Source of the DNA: Klebsormidium nitens
Lineage: Eukaryota; Plantae; Klebsormidiophyceae
NCBI GenBank assembly: GCA_000708835.1
Contig: DF237014.1
Span: 124,001-188,000, forward strand
Direction of reading: 5' to 3'
Length of the DNA: 64,000 nucleotides
The number at the start of each line of letters is the position of its first letter. The first letter of the stretch is position 1. Positions 1-10,710 of this stretch are shown piece by piece. The notes below the pieces were generated by a model that saw only the letters and a list, made by a program, of their open reading frames with translations, was not told the origin of the DNA and did not search any database. A program made the translations under genes and the position numbers.

Positions 1-7
1 TGGATAC

Positions 8-3000
8 CTGGTAGGTGGAGGTGATGATGAAGTCGGCGTGGTTCATGGCGATGAGGTCGGCGGTGAACTGCGCCGAGAAGTGGTACTTGTCGTCGAACGT
101 CTGCCAGTAAATGTCGCTGTCCGGGTACTTGGTCTTCTCCAGCGCGTGCGCGATGTTGCACTGCGTCACCTGAAAAATGGCACGACACAAACACGCGATG
201 TCAAGAAACCAGATTGCCGTAATAGGCATCAAGTCCAAGAACAGGGCGACTCTGGATCCCGTTGAAAAGGGATTTCAGAAGACACGCACGTTCACATCTG
301 TGACTAACAAACGCGTTCCAGGCCGCGCCATAATTTGCAGGCTGTCCTGACGTAGAGACCGCAACCAAGGTCCCACGGCAGATCAAGCAAGAGGAGCGAT
401 GCCAGTCAAATTTGGCATTACGAAAATCGGCGGGTGAGATTCAAGAGTGCGCACGGGCACGGGGGTGCCTCACGTGCATGCGGTGCGACAGAAGGGACGC
501 CACGAGGTTGCCGTCGCTGTAGTTGCCGATGATGAGGTCCGGCTGGCCGCCCAGCTCCGCCTTGATCTCGAACGCGGACTCGCTGCACGCAGCAACACAA
601 AGCTGTGAGCGGAAGCTTCGCAAGCTCTCTGTAACCTTCCTTCTGGCCGCAAACCGGCGACCAGGAAGGCAAAACGACAAGGCGCGCGTTTGAGCATCTA
701 AGAGGGTTCTATTTGATTAATGGCAGCTACTGAAGCCTTTTCAGAGCGATCCGCGGCGGAGTAAGGCATCCAGCCAGCCTAATAATCCTACTCACGCCCT
801 AAGCTCTCAGTTTGTGCCAATATACCTTGAATGCACAAGGTAGCGAGCCGAAGCCCTGATTTCTGCGCAAAAATCCGTCGAGCTTCAAAGCATGCGCCCG
901 CCCATAAACCCGTATCGAGATACTCCTTCGCAATGTCGACTTTGTCCCGGCCGTTTCGAGACTGCACTTCGTTTCACGATCTCCGCCTCTGCAGGCGCAC
1001 CGCCCTCACCGTGTAAACTCCTCAAGATAGGGCCAGACCTCGAAGCGCGAGATCCACTGCGGCAGGATTCCGCGCGCGTCGCGGAAGGGCACGCGCAGGA
1101 TGCGCGCGTGCTCGGTGCCGCTGATGCGCTCGATGCGCTGGTTGCACGTGGTGCCCTTGGCGTCGGGGATGAGGCGCGTCAGCACCACGATCTGCGGCGT
1201 GATGAAGTCCAGCCCCTGCTGCTTGTTGCGCGCGAGCATCTCCTGCTCCATCGCGCGCACCTGGTCCAATATGTACACCACCTGCGGACGCGGACTTCAA
1301 AGGGTGAGGCGGACAAACGAGAAAAATCGTCAGTACACCAGGAAGGGTGAACCGGATGCACGTCCGTTCCAAGCCTCGTTAGCGACGAGGGGGTTCATTT
1401 TTCCAAACGGGTCACGCTCGAGACAAATTCGTTTCTTGGCAAATAGTTCCTCGCTCTGAGCCCTCTGGTCTAGCAGACTAAAAACTACAAGTATGTCATT
1501 TGCACTTCAAGCTCAATCTTTGCCATGCTGTGCACGGAAGGATTCGAAGCACGTGACCGACTCCTCGAAGTTTTGACGCGGAAGTAACGGCGCCAATTTG
1601 GGCGGAACTTGTCAAGCAGCTTCGAAGTTGCTTCTCGTCGCAGTAGCACTTCGGGGCCAGCTTTGATCGGGGCAAGCAGCGCGCTTACCTGTCCGCCGGT
1701 GTCCGGCATCCCTAGGACATTGGCTTGGCCAAAATAGCCGTGGGGGGAGACGATGACCACGTTGAACACCATGGGTACTCGCGCCAGAAACTTTTCCAGG
1801 GTGTCGGGGTCCGGGGCCTGCAAACACGGACACGTGTCACGTACCAGCACCGTTTGGCATAGCAGCAGTGGAAGCAGGCAAAATATGTTGACTGGATCAT
1901 CTACCATCCGATTCTTACGGCGATGCCTGGAAAGAGCCCTGGCTGCGGTCTGCACAGCAAGTGCGAATCGCACCACACGCATCTGGCCCAGAAACGCTCT
2001 ACCATTCAATGCAAGAGTCCGATACAATCGAGTGACTCTCTCAAAATAACCGTTCGAAGGGTCTGTAACGTTTGTAACGTTGTAACGTTTCAAGTGCTTT
2101 CTCTGCACTGGGCCTCACGGTAAGCTCTCCCGTTTCAAACGTGCAAGAGCTCACCTGGCCTTAGGAGGCCGGTCACTTCATGCAACGCACAAAGGAAAGC
2201 GATTTGGGAAAATCGATGAGCAGACCCCCGGAAAACGCAAAACCAAAGTGTCGTGTTAGTGCTGGTTGACGTGAACACTCTCTCAGCCCCTCTCCGTAAC
2301 GGAACCCGACGCGAGATGCTTCCTCCTACTACGAGCTCCCTCACCTGGATGAGGTCTTGCAGGAGGCGCATGCTGGCGAGAATGGTGGCGGCGTCGCAGC
2401 CCCAGCCCTTCTCAAACCCACAATGCAGCAGCCTGCTACTCAGCTCTGCCACGGGTGTCGTAGGCTCTTCCTTTGACACCAACTCCTCAGCCGATGCTAG
2501 CGCGGACCTGACAGCGACGACGTGGGGCGAGTCGCTCAGCATGACGTCGACTAGTAACTTCGAACCGTTTCGAGGATGAACCTACCTGTGCTGACTTCAT
2601 GTTGACCCCCTGCAGTTCTTTCCACAGGAAAAGTGCATAAAAAGTTGGAAAACCAAAGGAAGCTTCCAATGTAGTCCAGAATAAGGTTGTTACATAATTT
2701 CCCTCCGAAAGTGTTCTCCTCGAGCAACAGCCGTTACCTGCAGCAGGTCTAACAGCAATTGGAGGCTCTGCTGGATGACCTCAGCGTTGGCCCCCCAGCC
2801 TCGCTGGAGGCCAAGGTCATCCAGCTTTTGCTCCAGCGCAGAGAAAGGGGCGTCCCTGGGGACCGTTTCCAAGTATTCCTCAGCGGCCGTCAGAGAGCGC
2901 CTGGGGGCATACGAAGTAGAATTAGCAGGGGAGGAGCCCCGTCGAAGCCCTATCTGAAACATTTCTTTGTAGGAGGGTCGTCAACGGGATTGAAAGTCAA

Positions 3001-5125
3001 TCTGTCAGTCAAATTCCATCCTCCTTGTCGGGTTTCACGAGTTCACTTGAAGTTTAAGCCGATTGTACATGGACTCCCTCGCCAGCCAAGACATGCCCCG
3101 CTTTCCCCTGCAGCAAATTTCCTGCCCGACACGTACAAGGTGGTTCTCCCAACCTGGCAGTACACCAACGTGATCACTTGGCGGCTACGGCCTGGTTCGT
3201 CTCTGAAAAAGACTTATCTCGGCATCCGCCTGCTCAAGCAAAGAAGCTGTCGCACGATAACAGGAGGGCAGCCTTCGCTTGCCCCCGGATCCAGGTTGAG
3301 GCGACTCACTTGAGGTCGTCCAGGCTCTGGATGCGTCCGTTGTTGATCATGAGCGACTCCCCCCGGTACTTGTGCATGCGCAGGAACTCAAACAGGGGCG
3401 CCATGCCCACCTTGCGCTCCGACATGATCTGGGACGACAGGTGCTTGTTCATGAACTGCACGCCCTGCCCAATCGAGGCCGCCCTGAAGACGGAGAGCAG
3501 TGTCAGAGGACAAAGACAGGATGTACGACCGCAGAACGACGTATAGACATAATCCATCACTTATGAATCAAGGTATTGTTTCAATTGCGTTCTCGAAGGA
3601 GGTTTGTAAGGACGGTCGGCCCTGACCCCCAGGCCTGGAACTTGAGTCGGGCATTCCACCGTATGTTAAAATCCATAAACGAAAAGGTCAGCCTTGGATG
3701 GTCTCTGCATTCAACGAATAACGGATGGACATCTGCAAAATGAGGACCTTGCTGGACCCAAGATACGTTCGATGTTTGTAAGTTAAACTAGGATCTTTGA
3801 CGACTTACTTCAATATCGCACCTAAACAAGGGAGTCGGTAGACAAGATACTGATTTTCACTGCTGCTGATGCCACAGTCGTTCATAGAAGGCCACTTTTG
3901 GACACTCCTGCCTCAAGCCCGTTGACGACAAACGCCCCCCAAGCCTACGCGGCTGAGCATATCATTGGACACAGTGGATAGTACATTCTTTTGGGGCGTC
4001 AGGTTTGCACCTGTTCATCTTGGGAAAGGCCCTGTTGAACGGCTCGAAATCCAGTTCCAGGACTGCATACGGCTCCATGAGCTGGTCGATGGTGCTGTGC
4101 TCGCCACTAGAGCCCCCCATGACCAGGCGCTCCTTGAATGTCAGATACTCAGTACCGGACATCTCCTCAAGGGACAGCTCGTCCATGTTCACCCTGGCAC
4201 AAGTTCGAAGAACAGCATTCGGTCAAAAGTCGATCAGCGCAACAAGCGACTGGACTGGTTATACGAATACCGCTCAGATGTTGCCAATTCAACAGGATCA
4301 GACTAAGCTTCCAACCAGGCTGACTGTCTGATACTTCAGAATTGATGGACAGACCAACCTTTTTGTACATGTTTAGTAACGCCCAAAGATTGTGCGAAGG
4401 AGCATACTCAAGCGAAGCACGTCACTTTGTCGAGAAAAGTAGGCCAGCCTTTCAGCTTTGCACATCTGCAAAGGCTCGCAAAATCTTCAAGGGCAGGGGT
4501 TTACTCACTTAATATATTGCCACTCTGCAACCCTGGGGCGCAGGGCGAGGGCAATGATAGGGTCCACTACCACCCCCTCTTGCGCTACTGCCAGCATTTT
4601 GGCAAAGTGGGACTCTGCAGATAATACACCCAGCAGTCAGAGCACGATTCACCGGGAGTATCCCTTAGACAGGGGATGTAAGAGAAACAATACCGTGAGT
4701 TAGCCCACGCAAGCCTGATCTGTCAGGCTTAAAACTCACCTCTCCCTGTCTTTGCTTGGTCTCAAAGATTGGTTGCCCTGGCATTCTCATCTGGATCTTG
4801 CAACCACGCAGATGTTTGCCAAAAAGGCAGTGCACTCCTACTATCCAGCGGGCCCATATTCTCTCGCAACTTCCACAGGCCAAAACTCAGGCAGACTCCA
4901 ATCATTTGCAGTGGTGCACGGTGACTTGCCTAGCACCTCTGGGGTGAATTCAGAGGCCTTCTTTAGGGCTTCCTGGAAATCATGCTGCAACAGGACCGGC
5001 GTCTTGATTCCTTTGAGGCGGTGCAGAACCAGTAGGATGTCGTTGCGGTGGCTGGACACCGAATCCCGCATCCGGCTTGACCAGGAGCGCTCGAACCTTG
5101 GCCTGGCCGCTAAGGAGGGCGCCAT
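8..5125 (-). CDS. SUS: Sucrose synthase (GT-B), 5' part; gene continues beyond the left edge
   Basis: Hand-spliced exons: 4930-5125 ([29 protein letters not shown]), 4509-4614 ([26 protein letters not shown]), 4011-4193 ([14 protein letters not shown]), 3310-3483 ([15 protein letters not shown]), 2738-2900 OR 2345-2507, 1689-1817 ([43 protein letters not shown]), 1010-1281 ([10 protein letters not shown]), 474-582 ([18 protein letters not shown]) and 8-169 ([21 protein letters not shown]). All intron phases are compatible and the motifs are diagnostic of SUS. Confidence 0.98.
2345..2507 (-). other. SUS: SUS alternative exon B (163 nt), paralog of exon A
   Basis: tgtcag|G acceptor and CAG|gtgagg donor; encodes [54 protein letters not shown]; same length and phases as exon A. 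Confidence 0.85.
2738..2900 (-). other. SUS: SUS alternative exon A (163 nt)
   Basis: ccccag|G acceptor and CAG|gtaac donor; encodes [54 protein letters not shown]. Confidence 0.9.
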
Positions 5126-5172
5126 CCCTATGCGTCCAGGCGGCAGTTTGAAGCTCGGAGAGAGGTGAGGAC

Positions 5173-5785
5173 CTGCGAAGGGGCAAAGTGCATTGCTACA
5201 ACCAGCAACTCTACATGAGCTGTGAATACGCAACCGCCCTTGATATGGCCTGGTGGAAGTTTGACATCACAACAAAGGCAAGCAGATTCTAAAGCGAAAT
5301 TCTACAAACTGATGCCGCAAACCTGCTGGAATGCTTGCAACAGATGTGCCAAAGATGGGCAGCTCTGAGAGCTTTAGACTTATGCTTGAGAGGCAGCTGG
5401 TGATTGCTGGCAGCTCACCACCAACGGAACAAGCTTCCAGCTCACTGCGGGCGTAGAAAATACAACATGCCAGAGTACAGACTGGGAAAAACACAGGAAC
5501 TGAGAAAGGCCAATCTGCCCGCACCAGTATTCCCAGCCCCTTGCGAGGCTTGAAAAACGACCCTGTCATCCTGCTTCATAGCATGCACGTTGTCTACCTT
5601 GTCCTCGTCCACAACCATTTCAATACACTTCCAGACCCAGGTTCCAATGGACTTGCAGCCTTTGGGAGTCTGCCTTCAAATAACGAAAAACTTCACAAAT
5701 GCTGTAGAACATGTTTTGTCTAAGTGTCACGGTCCTGCAGGGGCTCCACATCGCGGTTCCAGAGTTGTGCAGCTCAGGCACTCAC
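5173..5785 (-). other. SUS: Probable 5'UTR (leader) intron of SUS, 613 nt
   Basis: Consensus donor AG|GTGAGT at 5785; acceptor cttcgcag| at 5173, 47 nt upstream of the ATG at 5125. Confidence 0.55.
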
Positions 5786-6495
5786 CTAGTCAGCAATTCG
5801 TCGGACCTCTGCCGTCTCTGGTTTGCTGCATGCGAAGGAAGAGCCTGTTCGGCGGTTTTCAGCTTTTGGCAGGTGTCCTGAGAATGTGAAGGCTTCCAAA
5901 CAGCTTTTAGGCACCCGACGCACTGAAACTCAAGCTCTCTTTCGATCGTCTCTCCCTGAGCGTTCAGAAAACTCTAGCCTTTCAAGAGACCGAGTGCCAC
6001 CGCCAGCATTCCTTCACAGCTTGTGCAGTCTGCTGGAAGGTTGACCATGACTCGACTCGTCTTCCACAGCAGCGGCCATGGCAAGCGAACTCGAAAGGGC
6101 CCATGTTCCAGCATGGCGGCGACTCGCTCGCTGCGCTGAACTCTGCCAAGTGGCAGCCTAAGATCACGCTGAAAATTACAAGAGCATATCGAACCGTCCA
6201 ATCTGGATGGTATTGAAGTTGGACGGCTCCTGCTGCTCGTTGTTTCCAACTGCTGATGTCACCCTTGCCGACCAATTGTGTCTCGAACTCGTGTATGACA
6301 ATTGTCCTCGCACATGGACGGTCCAGACTCGCAGCGGCTGCAGGGGTCATTCTTTCCAGTCTTTCAATTTCCTTCTCTGAAGAGGGAAAGCTTGGAAACT
6401 TGAAAGTAGGAAACACCTCCTTCCCTCTGCTTCGCCAACGCGGAGCGCTTAGTACTGCAATCTGGGGGCGTTTGACTCTCGTTTGGTAGGACGCC

Positions 6496-9441
6496 ATGAT
6501 GACCTCTGCAATGTCTGCCCTGACTCACACCGGTACGCATCCTGTTTGCTCTTTTCTGAATGCATGCAGCAGTAAAGAGGGTATGCAAAGCATGCAGCCG
6601 TGCTCCAGCCTCTTCTTGAGGAGTAGAGGGGTCGTTCAGAAGGTCGTCAGAACACAGCGCCCTGTCTCCGCTGCATCGGCGTCCCCTGCTGCTCCTCTGG
6701 TTGGAAGGAGAACGGGGAGTTGGTTGCAGCTGGCTTCAGCGACAGCGCTTGTGGAAGAGCTCAGGGGGGAACAGTCAGGCAGGGCAGGTGAGCCCCCTGC
6801 AGGCCCCATTCTTGGCATTGGCCCCATCCCCACTGAGTTTCCTCAACCTGATGTGCAACCATTCCCCAACCCGGAGCCAAGTGTGCCTGGTGCACCAGAA
6901 GTTAGTCCCAGCACGCCCCCAAACCCTGCCCCCAGCACACCTCCGGAAGTGCCCCCTCTGATTAGCCCTCCTGAGCCGGACACAACAGAGGTGCCTGGAC
7001 AGCCCAGTGGTCCGGAGGTTCCTAGCACACCAGTGCCAGAAATACTGCCTGATCCAGGCCGTGGTGAGGCTCAGTGGTCCTTGCCTTCAAATACTGCGAG
7101 CCTGTGACTTCTTTCCTTTGTCTTTGCATAGATTCCCACGCAAGCCAAGGGAAGGTGCTTCTTGAGCTGAAATTTAGAACCAACTATTCTGGAATGAGTT
7201 GGAAGCATGGACGCTTCTTCATATCTGCTTCTATCTTGTCAGCATTGTTCTTCCCTACTTGTTGATAAGAGTTCCAGGACAATGTATGACACATTGAACT
7301 GCAAGTCAGGATCATGACGCGCTGAGTTCCAAGATGGACCAGCGCAGTAGCGTTTCTTCTGGTTCTCTGCTTTTGCAAGCCATATGCACCCTTGACATTG
7401 TGAGGCAACACCCTCGATACATTTCGTCAGAGAAATGCTCAGAAGCAGAGTCTTGATTGATGAGTCCTTCCTTTTGCAGGACCGGAGACGCCTGTCATCT
7501 CGCCTCCTGACTTTCCGGAGAGACCCTCAGGGCCGGAGGTTCCCATCCCCACGCGCAGGCAGCCAGACACTCCCACCACCACTCCTCCTGAGTTCCCGGG
7601 AGGGCTTCCTGGAATTGAGGTCCCCGGCCCGACCATCCCTGGCCCCAGCCCATCCCCTGGAACTTCACCTGGCCCCATCATTGGTGAGTGGCGTGCTGGC
7701 CAGGGTGCAGTGGAGGGATTTGGGCAGGTTGAGCCCTTTCATCAGGCTCTTAGGATGCGGAAGGTGCCCAGGGTCCTAGAAGGGGTTACAGGGAGGGTAG
7801 AGCAGCATCGTGACAGCCGGGTGATGTTGTCTTTGGGCTTTCCGTATGGTGTCAAGCCTCCAGTTCCGCCCGCTGAAGTGCGCCCAGCTCCGCCAAGCAG
7901 TCCCCAAACCCCTGGAGTCCTGCCCGATGCCCCCTCTATGGCACCCCCTCTGATTCAGCCCCCTCAAGCAAACCCGAGTCTGCCGCCAGGGGCAACACCA
8001 AATGATCCGGGGATTGCCATCACCCCACCTTCTGACACACCTAGCGACGACAACATTGCCGTTGTGCCACCCCCAACACGGCCCCCTGTCCCGGAAAAGG
8101 CCCCATTCCAAGCACCTGAGAGCCCCTTCCCTGGCGATGTTGAAAAGCTACCCCCGCCAGAGTTGCGGCCTCCTGGACCTTCAAAGCCAGACCCTGACTC
8201 CCCTGCTCCTGGCGCACCCATCCCTAGTCCAAACCCCCAACAACCAAAGCCCTCTCCTCCCCCAGGAGCTGAGCCACTACCCCCTTCTGGCAAACCGCCA
8301 GCCACCCCGCCCCCCCAAGCAAAACCCCTGCGGCCACCCGGCTCTCCCCCAATCACACCGATGCCGAACGTGACCCCATCACCTCAATTGAAGGGTGCTA
8401 GTGCCTCCGCTGATCGTTCTGGACGGACAGGTTCACCTGTTAGCCTTCTCTCTGTGTCCACCATTCAGGTTCCAAATACGCCCTTGCTTAGGCATTCACG
8501 CCCTGTCTCTGCGAATGCAGGAGGCCTAGGTATTTCAGCAATCGTCACCCCACCCCAGCCTGTCCCTCCGGTTGGGCCGGGCACAGGGTCCCCTCCTCCA
8601 TTTCCCGGAAACCCCGGCAATCCGACCCCTCCCCCTCAGACCCCTCCCCAAACTCCCCCCCCGCAAGCACCGCCGGGTGGTCCTGCTNNNNNNNNNNNNN
8701 NNNNNNNNNNNNNNNNNNNNNNNNNNNNNNNNNNNNNNNNNNNNNNNNNNNNNNNNNNNNNNNNNNNNNNNNNNNNNNNNNNNNNNNNNNNNNNNNNNNN
8801 NNNNNNNNNNNNNNNNNNNNNNNNNNNNNNNNNNNNNNNNNNNNNNNNNNNNNNNNNNNNNNNNNNNNNNNNNNNNNNNNNNNNNNNNNNNNNNNNNNNN
8901 NNNNNNNNNNNNNNNNNNNNNNNNNNNNNNNNNNNNNNNNNNNNNNNNNNNNNNNNNNNNNNNNNNNNNNNNNNNNNNNNNNNNNNNNNNNNNNNNNNNN
9001 NNNNNNNNNNNNNNNNNNNNNNNNNNNNNNNNNNNNNNNNNNNNNNNNNNNNNNNNNNNNNNNNNNNNNNNNNNNNNNNNNNNNNNNNNNNNNNNNNNNN
9101 NNNNNNNNNNNNNNNNNNNNNNNNNNNNNNNNNNNNNNNNNNNNNNNNNNNNNNNNNNNNNNNNNNNNNNNNNNNNNNNNNNNNNNNNNNNNNNNNNNNN
9201 NNNNNNNNNNNNNNNNNNNNNNNNNNNNNNNNNNNNNNNNNNNNNNNNNNNNNNNNNNNNNNNNNNNNNNNNTCGGCAACTCCCGACCCCTCCCCCTCAA
9301 ACCCCTCCCCAAACTCCCCCCCCGCAAGCACCGCCCGGCGGTCCTGCTCCCCCCCCGTTCCCGAAGAATCCAGGCCTGCCTCCGACTGGTCCGTCTCCGC
9401 CGCCTATGCCCGGGCCAGGAACAGGGCCTGGGACTGCCTGA
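6496..9441 (+). CDS. Proline-rich repeat protein (PEVP/PPEV and PPPQTPP modules) with Ser/Arg/Ala-rich N-terminus; interrupted by an assembly gap
   Basis: ORFs 6496-7063 and 7480-9441 are joined by a phase-1 GT-AG intron (7064-7479). Low-complexity Pro-rich modules; C-terminus ...GPGTGPGTA*. Exact start and internal splicing are unresolved. Confidence 0.7.
8595..9348 (+). repeat. Coding tandem repeat, unit about 96 nt (PPPFPGNPGNPTPPPQTPPQTPPPQAPPGGPA), collapsed into the gap
   Basis: Near-identical sequence (ccgacccctccccctca...ccgcaagcaccgcc.gg.ggtcctgct) lies immediately before and after the N run. Confidence 0.75.
8688..9272. other. Assembly gap (585 N)
   Basis: Run of N. Confidence 1.
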
Positions 9442-10710
9442 GCAACTGAGCACAAGCCTTTATTAGTACAAGCTTTATTCGTGATTCTTTGAGTGCAGTA
9501 TGTAGTCGAGGAACGGCCTTTTTGAGAACCTTCTAATGGAGTTTCGTGAGTTTTATAAGAGAGTTTAGTGACCCGTTCTTATGCAGAATCAGGAGATTGA
9601 TTGTACGGTAAATCAAAAGCGCTTTCAACCTTAACGCGATACGCTCTTGACTTTGTAGGCGGAGTCTTTGAGCAACCAGTGGCACGGGTGTATGCTTTGC
9701 GCTGAAACACATGCAGCGTTGATTTTGATCGAGTTCCTTACATGTTTGATGCAACGGTTCATCGTTCAATATGGCCGACTTGAAGTTACGGTGCAGTAAA
9801 TCCATGCACGCTGATCCCCGTGTCCCGTGCCCATCACTTGACATGCCACGATTCTACTGCATCATACCATTGTGTATTTGCATCACGGCGGCCTGCCCAC
9901 GTTGGGAGAGAATCCGATCCTGGTTCCGTTCTAATCAATTACAGATCCGCTATATCTGCCACGGCGCCTGTAAGCTTCCCCCTCATGGTTGCATGAATGA
10001 TTCAAAGGCCACACACTCATAGCTCTAAATGCTCGTGTCATGCACATCATGCCAACTTGTGCTAAGTGTGTCCATAATAGTCGACGTCAAGCTACATGAA
10101 TAGCGCTAAACCGGTGGTTACTCGCAAGATTCTTTCAGCATCACATGCGCCGCGGTGCCTTCAAAGGAGAATACGTTTCTCTTGAAAAAGGCTCTTGTTA
10201 GATGTACAGGCGATCGGATGCAGATCAGGTGACCCAATTTACGCGTGATCGACGCAGTTGCACCTTACTGTAGGTCTTTTTAAGCAGCTGCTGTAGAGGC
10301 CGGCGGCCTAGCACCGCCGAATTACAATACTTGGACGTATTACTACGATTGGTCGATCCTTCGAAAACCCGTTTGATTCTCAGATGCTGCCAGGTGCAGT
10401 GGTCTTAAAACACATAACATAAGATAAATACCGCAAACTTGGCGATGACCAGCCTCAGCTCATGTTAGCTAATGCATGCCGAGTAGACGGGCACAGGGAT
10501 GTACGAGCAAAAGAAGACGGTAAATTGAGAGCTGTTAATTAATTCTCTGAAAACCCACCGAGAGTTCATCCACTCTGTCACTTGTGGCTTAATACAAGCT
10601 ATCAAGGCGCAGTCAGAATGTCAGGGGCACACATTCCATCATTCTAGCAACTACAGAAGCGGTCACCATGTTTCGAAGTCCTGTTGTTTTGTACTGGGAC
10701 GTATCCCCGT

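Follow-up and report, generated by a model that had tools for sequence, protein, structure and literature searches.

On the reverse strand of a 64,000-nucleotide (nt) stretch of the Klebsormidium nitens genome (assembly GCA_000708835.1, scaffold DF237014.1, positions 124,001 to 188,000; this stretch is hereafter the window, and all positions are counted from its first letter) lies part of a gene annotated as sucrose synthase (SUS; GAQ80888.1, 938 aa), and intron 5 of this gene harbors an intact, unannotated exon that is a homologous twin of the annotated exon 6. We refer to the unannotated upstream copy as exon A and to the annotated copy as exon B. The protein was retrieved by a profile search whose alignment was built on a chlorophyte scaffold, and the annotated model could be rebuilt exactly, with 17 coding exons and 16 introns; the exon-B splice form taken from the window is 100% identical to GAQ80888.1 over 498 aa. 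All of its Pfam domains score above their cut-offs (SUS_N 110.9, SUS_EPBD 95.2, GT-B_Sucrose_synth 536.6 and Glycos_transf_1 96.5 bits), and it is about 58% identical to land-plant SUS. Judged by its sequence, GAQ80888.1 is predicted to be a sucrose synthase (GT4, EC 2.4.1.13), an enzyme that would interconvert sucrose plus UDP with UDP-glucose plus fructose.

The initial annotation, made from the letters of the window, had described two 163-nt exons lying 230 nt apart, and the positions and properties that it gave all hold (Table 1). The canonical AG/GT borders, the shared phase and the stop-free frames can be read directly in the sequence (...cccccag before and gtaacg after exon A; ...ctgtcag before and gtgagg after exon B), and the translations are identical to those of the initial annotation. 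The two peptides align without gaps with 19 identical residues over 53–54 positions (BLASTP E 1e-11), in keeping with the 19/54 first reported, while nucleotide identity is approximately 50%; a search of positions 1–6000 with TRF returned no repeat, the pair being too diverged for it. The exons are thus adjacent and homologous, and have the same length and phase. The proposal that the segment belongs to the EPBD also stands, as both peptides align to residues 210–261 of AtSUS1 (PDB 3s27) and both pass the gathering cut-off of Pfam PF24862 SUS_EPBD (27.7 bits) over its positions 53–87, with 34.6 bits for A and 32.9 bits for B. The EPBD of plant SUS extends over approximately residues 155–274 (PMC6205638), and each exon is predicted to encode its C-terminal third (about 35 residues) together with the helix leading into GT-B(N). 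We conclude that the twins stem from an old tandem exon duplication in the region of a sucrose synthase gene that codes for the EPBD. No further duplicated exon was found when GAQ80888.1 was searched by tblastn against its own locus.

Table 1. Exons, spacer and candidate RNA structures at the K. nitens sucrose synthase locus (window coordinates).
Feature	Position	Strand	Evidence or remark
Sucrose synthase exons 1–10 (of 17)	1..5618	-	remaining exons beyond window start
Exon 5, upstream constitutive exon, ending ...RIQSLDDL plus AA of a Lys codon	3310..3483	-	sequence; RNA contigs joining 3310 to 2507
Exon A, intact 163-nt twin, unannotated, no spliced form seen	2738..2900	-	sequence, Pfam, profile; unspliced contigs only
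Candidate hairpin in exon A, 12-nt perfect arms 2770-2781 and 2814-2825, extended by fold	2770..2825	-	lead only
Spacer between twins, 230 nt, GC 0.48	2508..2737	-	sequence
Exon B, 163 nt, copy in all observed mRNAs and annotation	2345..2507	-	contig joints; GAQ80888.1 contains exon B exactly
Candidate intronic arm downstream of exon B, 14/15 complementary to exon A 2833-2847	2097..2111	-	lead only
Exon 7, downstream constitutive exon, ...PDTGGQ	1689..1817	-	sequence, splicing, RNA contigs

The reading frame dictates how the two copies can be combined. When the exons were spliced in a script, the coding sequence stayed open for more than 500 codons with A alone or with B alone, whereas inclusion of both leads to a stop 8 codons past the end of exon A, and skipping of both also leads to a premature stop; this bears out the claim that either exon, but not the two together, joins its neighbors in frame. 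Since 163 nt do not make up a whole number of codons, only one twin fits into a productive mRNA. Intron 5, in its annotated form, is the sole length outlier of the gene at 802 nt (other introns 290–527 nt), and counting A as an exon would split it into introns of 409 and 230 nt, which are normal sizes. The peptides are similar in net charge and differ in cysteines: exon B has two, aligned to I236 and D244 of AtSUS1 and flanking the GWG motif, and exon A has none. Separately, K. nitens has Asp where the plant sequence APDPCTLE has its Cys.

To judge how well exon A has been kept, the homologous 54 columns were extracted from 140 other SUS proteins and made into a family profile. By every measure taken against this family the unannotated copy is on a par with the annotated one. 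On average, A shares 38.7% and B 38.5% of residues with the family, with a maximum of 48%; of the 21 columns with a conservation of 70% or more, A matches 15 and B 13; and a hidden Markov model (HMM) of the 140 sequences gives 69.0 bits to A, 65.4 to B and 68.4 to the B-type segment of K. subtile, values near the lower decile of real SUS members, while 400 shuffles reached at most 6.2 bits. With the 140 proteins as outgroups, relative-rate counts are even between the twins, at 7.9 sites changed only in B and 7.8 only in A. Synonymous divergence (dS) between the twins is saturated (1.3 by NG86, more than 20 by maximum likelihood) and nonsynonymous divergence (dN) is 0.64–0.73. At third codon positions the GC content (GC3) reaches 0.76 for A and 0.74 for B, compared with a GC of 0.48–0.54 for the flanking introns. 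The residues shared by A and B are spaced 3–4 positions apart, a pattern like that of the buried side of a helix. Both splice sites of exon A (donor CAG/GTAACG, score 7.5; acceptor, score 4.5) fall inside the range of the 16 real introns of the gene.

A decayed pseudo-exon was considered and rejected, since exon A has no stops or frameshifts and has kept its splice sites, family residues and coding composition. In neutral simulations starting from exon A, the AG, the GT and the open frame were all kept in 38% of cases at 0.1 substitutions per site and in 16% at 0.2, and the family score fell to 46 and 29 bits, respectively. The saturated dS, the profile scores and the balanced rates are in line with the original suggestion of an old duplication kept under selection. 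Both twins have probably been shaped by purifying selection, and exon A has been constrained as protein-coding sequence almost throughout its existence as a twin, such that any retirement would be recent. Searches among proteins of 30–95 aa with the 54-aa peptides of A and B gave no candidates, a blank that carries no weight, as that length range leaves out full-length proteins and the expressed B had no match either. Scans of metagenomes with exon A and with exon B gave pattern matches and no relative, and a search of a representative library with the 94-aa exon 8 found no close relative, the best match having 73% identity.

The RNA record is one-sided. All sampled words of exon B are present in 14 public runs, and contigs were mapped from three of the runs (X1, X2 and X6), which represent three studies and three organism labels. 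In all three, joints at 3308/2505 and 2344/1816 place exon B directly between exons 5 and 7; run X2 has both within one 3323-nt contig of depth 68, the junction contigs of run X1 reach depths of 247–310, and run X6 has one, at depth 4. The public annotation GAQ80888.1 likewise uses exon B and omits exon A. The 90% cluster of GAQ80888.1 also includes two Trinity transcripts of the sister species K. subtile, i1 and i2, whose sole difference from each other is at the 5′ end; in both, the segment is of the B type, with changes at 3 of its 54 residues. All RNA sources and the annotation thus agree on exon B as the default. Six runs under four other organism labels, and one unlabelled, contained 25–42% of the sampled exon B words, and may come from related species that keep B.

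Exon A is covered by unspliced contigs only, at 2478–3337 in X1 (depth 57) and 2732–3022 in X2 (depth 5). The unspliced X1 contig of the neighboring intron, 1791–2373, has a depth of 13, compared with 57 for the intron containing exon A; slower splicing of that intron and local extra transcription are both possible causes of the difference. In X2, only 2732–3022 (exon A plus 122 nt upstream) was assembled and the remainder of intron 5 is uncovered. A search of positions 1600–3600 against Rfam at E ≤ 1 gave no match, leaving the patchy coverage of exon A without a known intronic RNA as its cause. No joint between A and B occurs among the contigs of the three runs. Of the junctions that the initial annotation had proposed to count, those from exon 5 to B and from B to exon 7 were thus found in the contigs, and none to A. 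Contigs and Trinity assemblies lose minor isoforms and are sensitive to abundant forms; since minor variants are dropped, the claim that these data allow for exon A is, roughly, that it is not abundant. An abundant A isoform is excluded, and a rare or conditional one is compatible with the contig data.

Two candidate RNA structures involve exon A. The RNA of exon A (2728–2910, reverse strand) folds with a minimum free energy of -83.4 kcal/mol (z -2.66; one of 200 shuffles was as stable), with a fold that centers on a 12-nt perfect inverted repeat and in which the donor site is paired as well, while exon B has no comparable fold (z +0.97). The repeat was equalled in 14 of 300 dinucleotide shuffles. 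The complementarity between 2097–2111 and 2833–2847, which was equalled in 6 of 300 dinucleotide shuffles, could form a pairing that would loop out exon B. We treat these structures as leads only; they would suit a switch and a silenced exon A equally well.

Our explanation, which we hold with about even confidence, is that the twins are mutually exclusive exons used with a strong bias, B being the default and A rare or confined to conditions or cell states that the runs did not sample. Such a pair would have arisen by the long-ago tandem duplication of exon 6 to which the homology of the twins attests. The equal constraint on the two copies suggests that both were translated over a long period, and the frame would let this happen only in separate molecules. 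Today B would be chosen by default, as the RNA data bear out, and A would be chosen rarely or under unsampled conditions, with molecules that include both exons or skip both presumably cleared by nonsense-mediated decay (NMD). As to what might keep the two apart, a 230-nt spacer is too long for steric exclusion, and because all splice sites look U2-type an incompatibility of splice sites is unlikely. The initial annotation had proposed that one locus may make two SUS isoforms; the frame logic of one exon or the other stands, and mutually exclusive use is so far unsupported, as only B is spliced in the sampled RNA. Among the signs put forward as counting against the proposal was disuse of one exon together with its decay in sister species; exon A is never spliced in the contigs, the first half of this sign, and shows no decay within the K. 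nitens genome. Because exon A was not found in mRNA, we regard the pair as candidate mutually exclusive exons and not as a member of that class.

Several observations weigh against a pair that is still in use. Neither the contigs of the three runs nor the Trinity assembly of K. subtile contain a joint to exon A, and with exon depths of 250–350 in run X1 an abundant A isoform should have given junction contigs. The donor of exon B is the best in the gene, with a score of 11.5 versus 7.5 for that of exon A, and a stable hairpin locking exon A would fit its silencing too.

These observations bring in the strongest of the rival explanations, namely that exon A was retired recently: either the two exons would have alternated during the greater part of their history or A would have been the original exon, and the splicing of A would now be lost. 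No RNA source contains spliced A and the annotation omits it, its weaker donor lacks a G at +5, the stable internal hairpin fits a silenced exon, and the simulations leave room for approximately 0.05–0.1 neutral substitutions per site. On the other side, since dS is saturated, a retirement would have to be confined to the last few percent of the history of the pair, and the profile score, conserved columns and GC3 of A are no lower than those of the expressed B, with both of its splice sites intact. We consider a recent retirement possible, though on balance unlikely.

Exon A could also be kept for a regulatory rather than a coding role, either as a poison cassette, in which inclusion of A and B together would bring in the stop and NMD, or as a structured brake on the removal of intron 5, which would tune SUS output. 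The stop predicted 8 codons after A in the double-inclusion form would suit the former, and the retention of the exon-A intron in X1, at more than the depth of the next intron, together with the unusual fold stability and the two inverted repeats involving A, would suit the latter. But a regulatory element needs no SUS-like frame, no family residues and no coding GC3, and exon A has kept all three; moreover, the joint of A to B that a poison cassette would leave was not found in the contigs, and the contrast in depth depends on the contig means of one run. We therefore think a purely regulatory exon A improbable. That A or B was recently captured from a paralogous SUS gene, or is an assembly chimera, so that the twins never coexisted under selection at this locus, is very improbable: A and B are not sisters in a 54-aa tree (whose signal is too low to date the duplication or name a donor) and their identity to each other (36%) is no higher than that of either to other SUS (mean 39%, maximum 48%), but the unspliced contigs 1791–2373 and 2478–3337, from an independent run, follow the order of the assembly through both exons with 100% identity, which also bears out that the exons do not belong to separate paralogs, no contig of an expressed paralog (at least 92% identity) mapped on exon A, and none of 284 retrieved SUS proteins is more than 48% identical to either exon.

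If the biased pair is in use, a more specific form of it can be put forward tentatively. Exon A may serve as a condition-specific alternative, in desiccation, cold, darkness or reproductive cells (states with known regulation of Klebsormidium SUS), gated by the exon-A hairpin and the pairing with the downstream intron, and the gene would then make two SUS with different EPBD surfaces; we rate this as doubtful. SUS transcripts of Klebsormidium are known to go up on desiccation (PMC4207709, PMC6691101).

The pair has much in common with mutually exclusive exons that arose by tandem duplication, such as exons 7a and 7b of mammalian ATE1 (PMC7797038; for a model, PMC6071210). As in those pairs, the exons are adjacent, homologous and equal in length and phase, productive mRNAs have room for only one twin, the length is no whole number of codons, such that the frame catches double inclusion, and candidate complementary RNA segments lie around one of the exons. 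Unlike in those pairs, only B is seen in mRNA here and no conserved docking or selector elements have been shown, and the host is a streptophyte alga, a lineage in which such splicing has seldom been documented. In our searches, no literature tying Klebsormidium to mutually exclusive splicing was found.

The SUS I, II and III groups of land plants (PMC6921546, PMC13204778) represent the same enzyme with the same SUS_N/EPBD/GT-B plan, and there, too, isoforms differ in the regulatory N-terminal part. In land plants, however, this diversity came from duplication of whole genes or genomes, with highly conserved exon lengths and rare tandem duplication, whereas in K. nitens the potential diversity lies inside one gene, as a 54-residue cassette. 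A 2019 study of SUS evolution reports conserved exon lengths and expansion through whole-genome duplication, and a 2026 review of the family mentions alternative splicing in the title of a reference only and has no word beginning with “exon”. A search of the literature for sucrose synthase together with mutually exclusive exons returned generic transcriptome surveys only; no published description was found, in agreement with the initial annotation, which knew of no such exons in SUS.

Among other SUS genes, that of Closterium has one copy of the segment, and that of Diphasiastrum has one copy, split over two exons. At the SUS locus of [Myrmecia] bisecta (JALJOR010000008.1, locus 9070–10070), the homologous segment (…TPYKDIALKMQDMGFERGWG…) is tandemly repeated just upstream of the annotated exon, which recalls the K. 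nitens arrangement. Unlike the K. nitens pair, this array is young, with 76–84% nucleotide matches and a period of 110–236 nt, and its copies are partial and frame-broken; several other exons of the same gene also have partial copies nearby, whereas in K. nitens both copies are whole exons. The [Myrmecia] bisecta array is a different phenomenon.

Some further features of the locus were recorded. Coding exon 2 is followed by a GC donor (TAG/GCAAGT) at 4929 on the reverse strand, the sole non-GT donor among the 16 introns. The annotated start of the protein lies in an upstream exon that adds 47 residues (window positions 5525–5618 and 5125, reverse strand). One of the K. subtile transcripts has this 47-residue 5′ extension and the other lacks it, and the 5′ end or start codon is apparently alternative; the extension is also the part least conserved between K. 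nitens and K. subtile (12/32 differences). Upstream of the SUS gene, at approximately 8690–9000, the assembly has a gap, written as a run of N.

The pair draws attention to an exon that the public annotation lacks. Even if exon A is silent, an old unused twin that looks as constrained as the used one offers a concrete test of whether intactness predicts use. If A is used, a streptophyte alga near the base of the land-plant lineage would obtain SUS isoforms within one gene, by swapping 54 residues of the EPBD, in a part of the enzyme tied to oligomer contacts, phosphorylation and partner binding. And should its use prove to be condition-specific, this would be the first isoform switch by exon swapping to be described for sucrose synthase.

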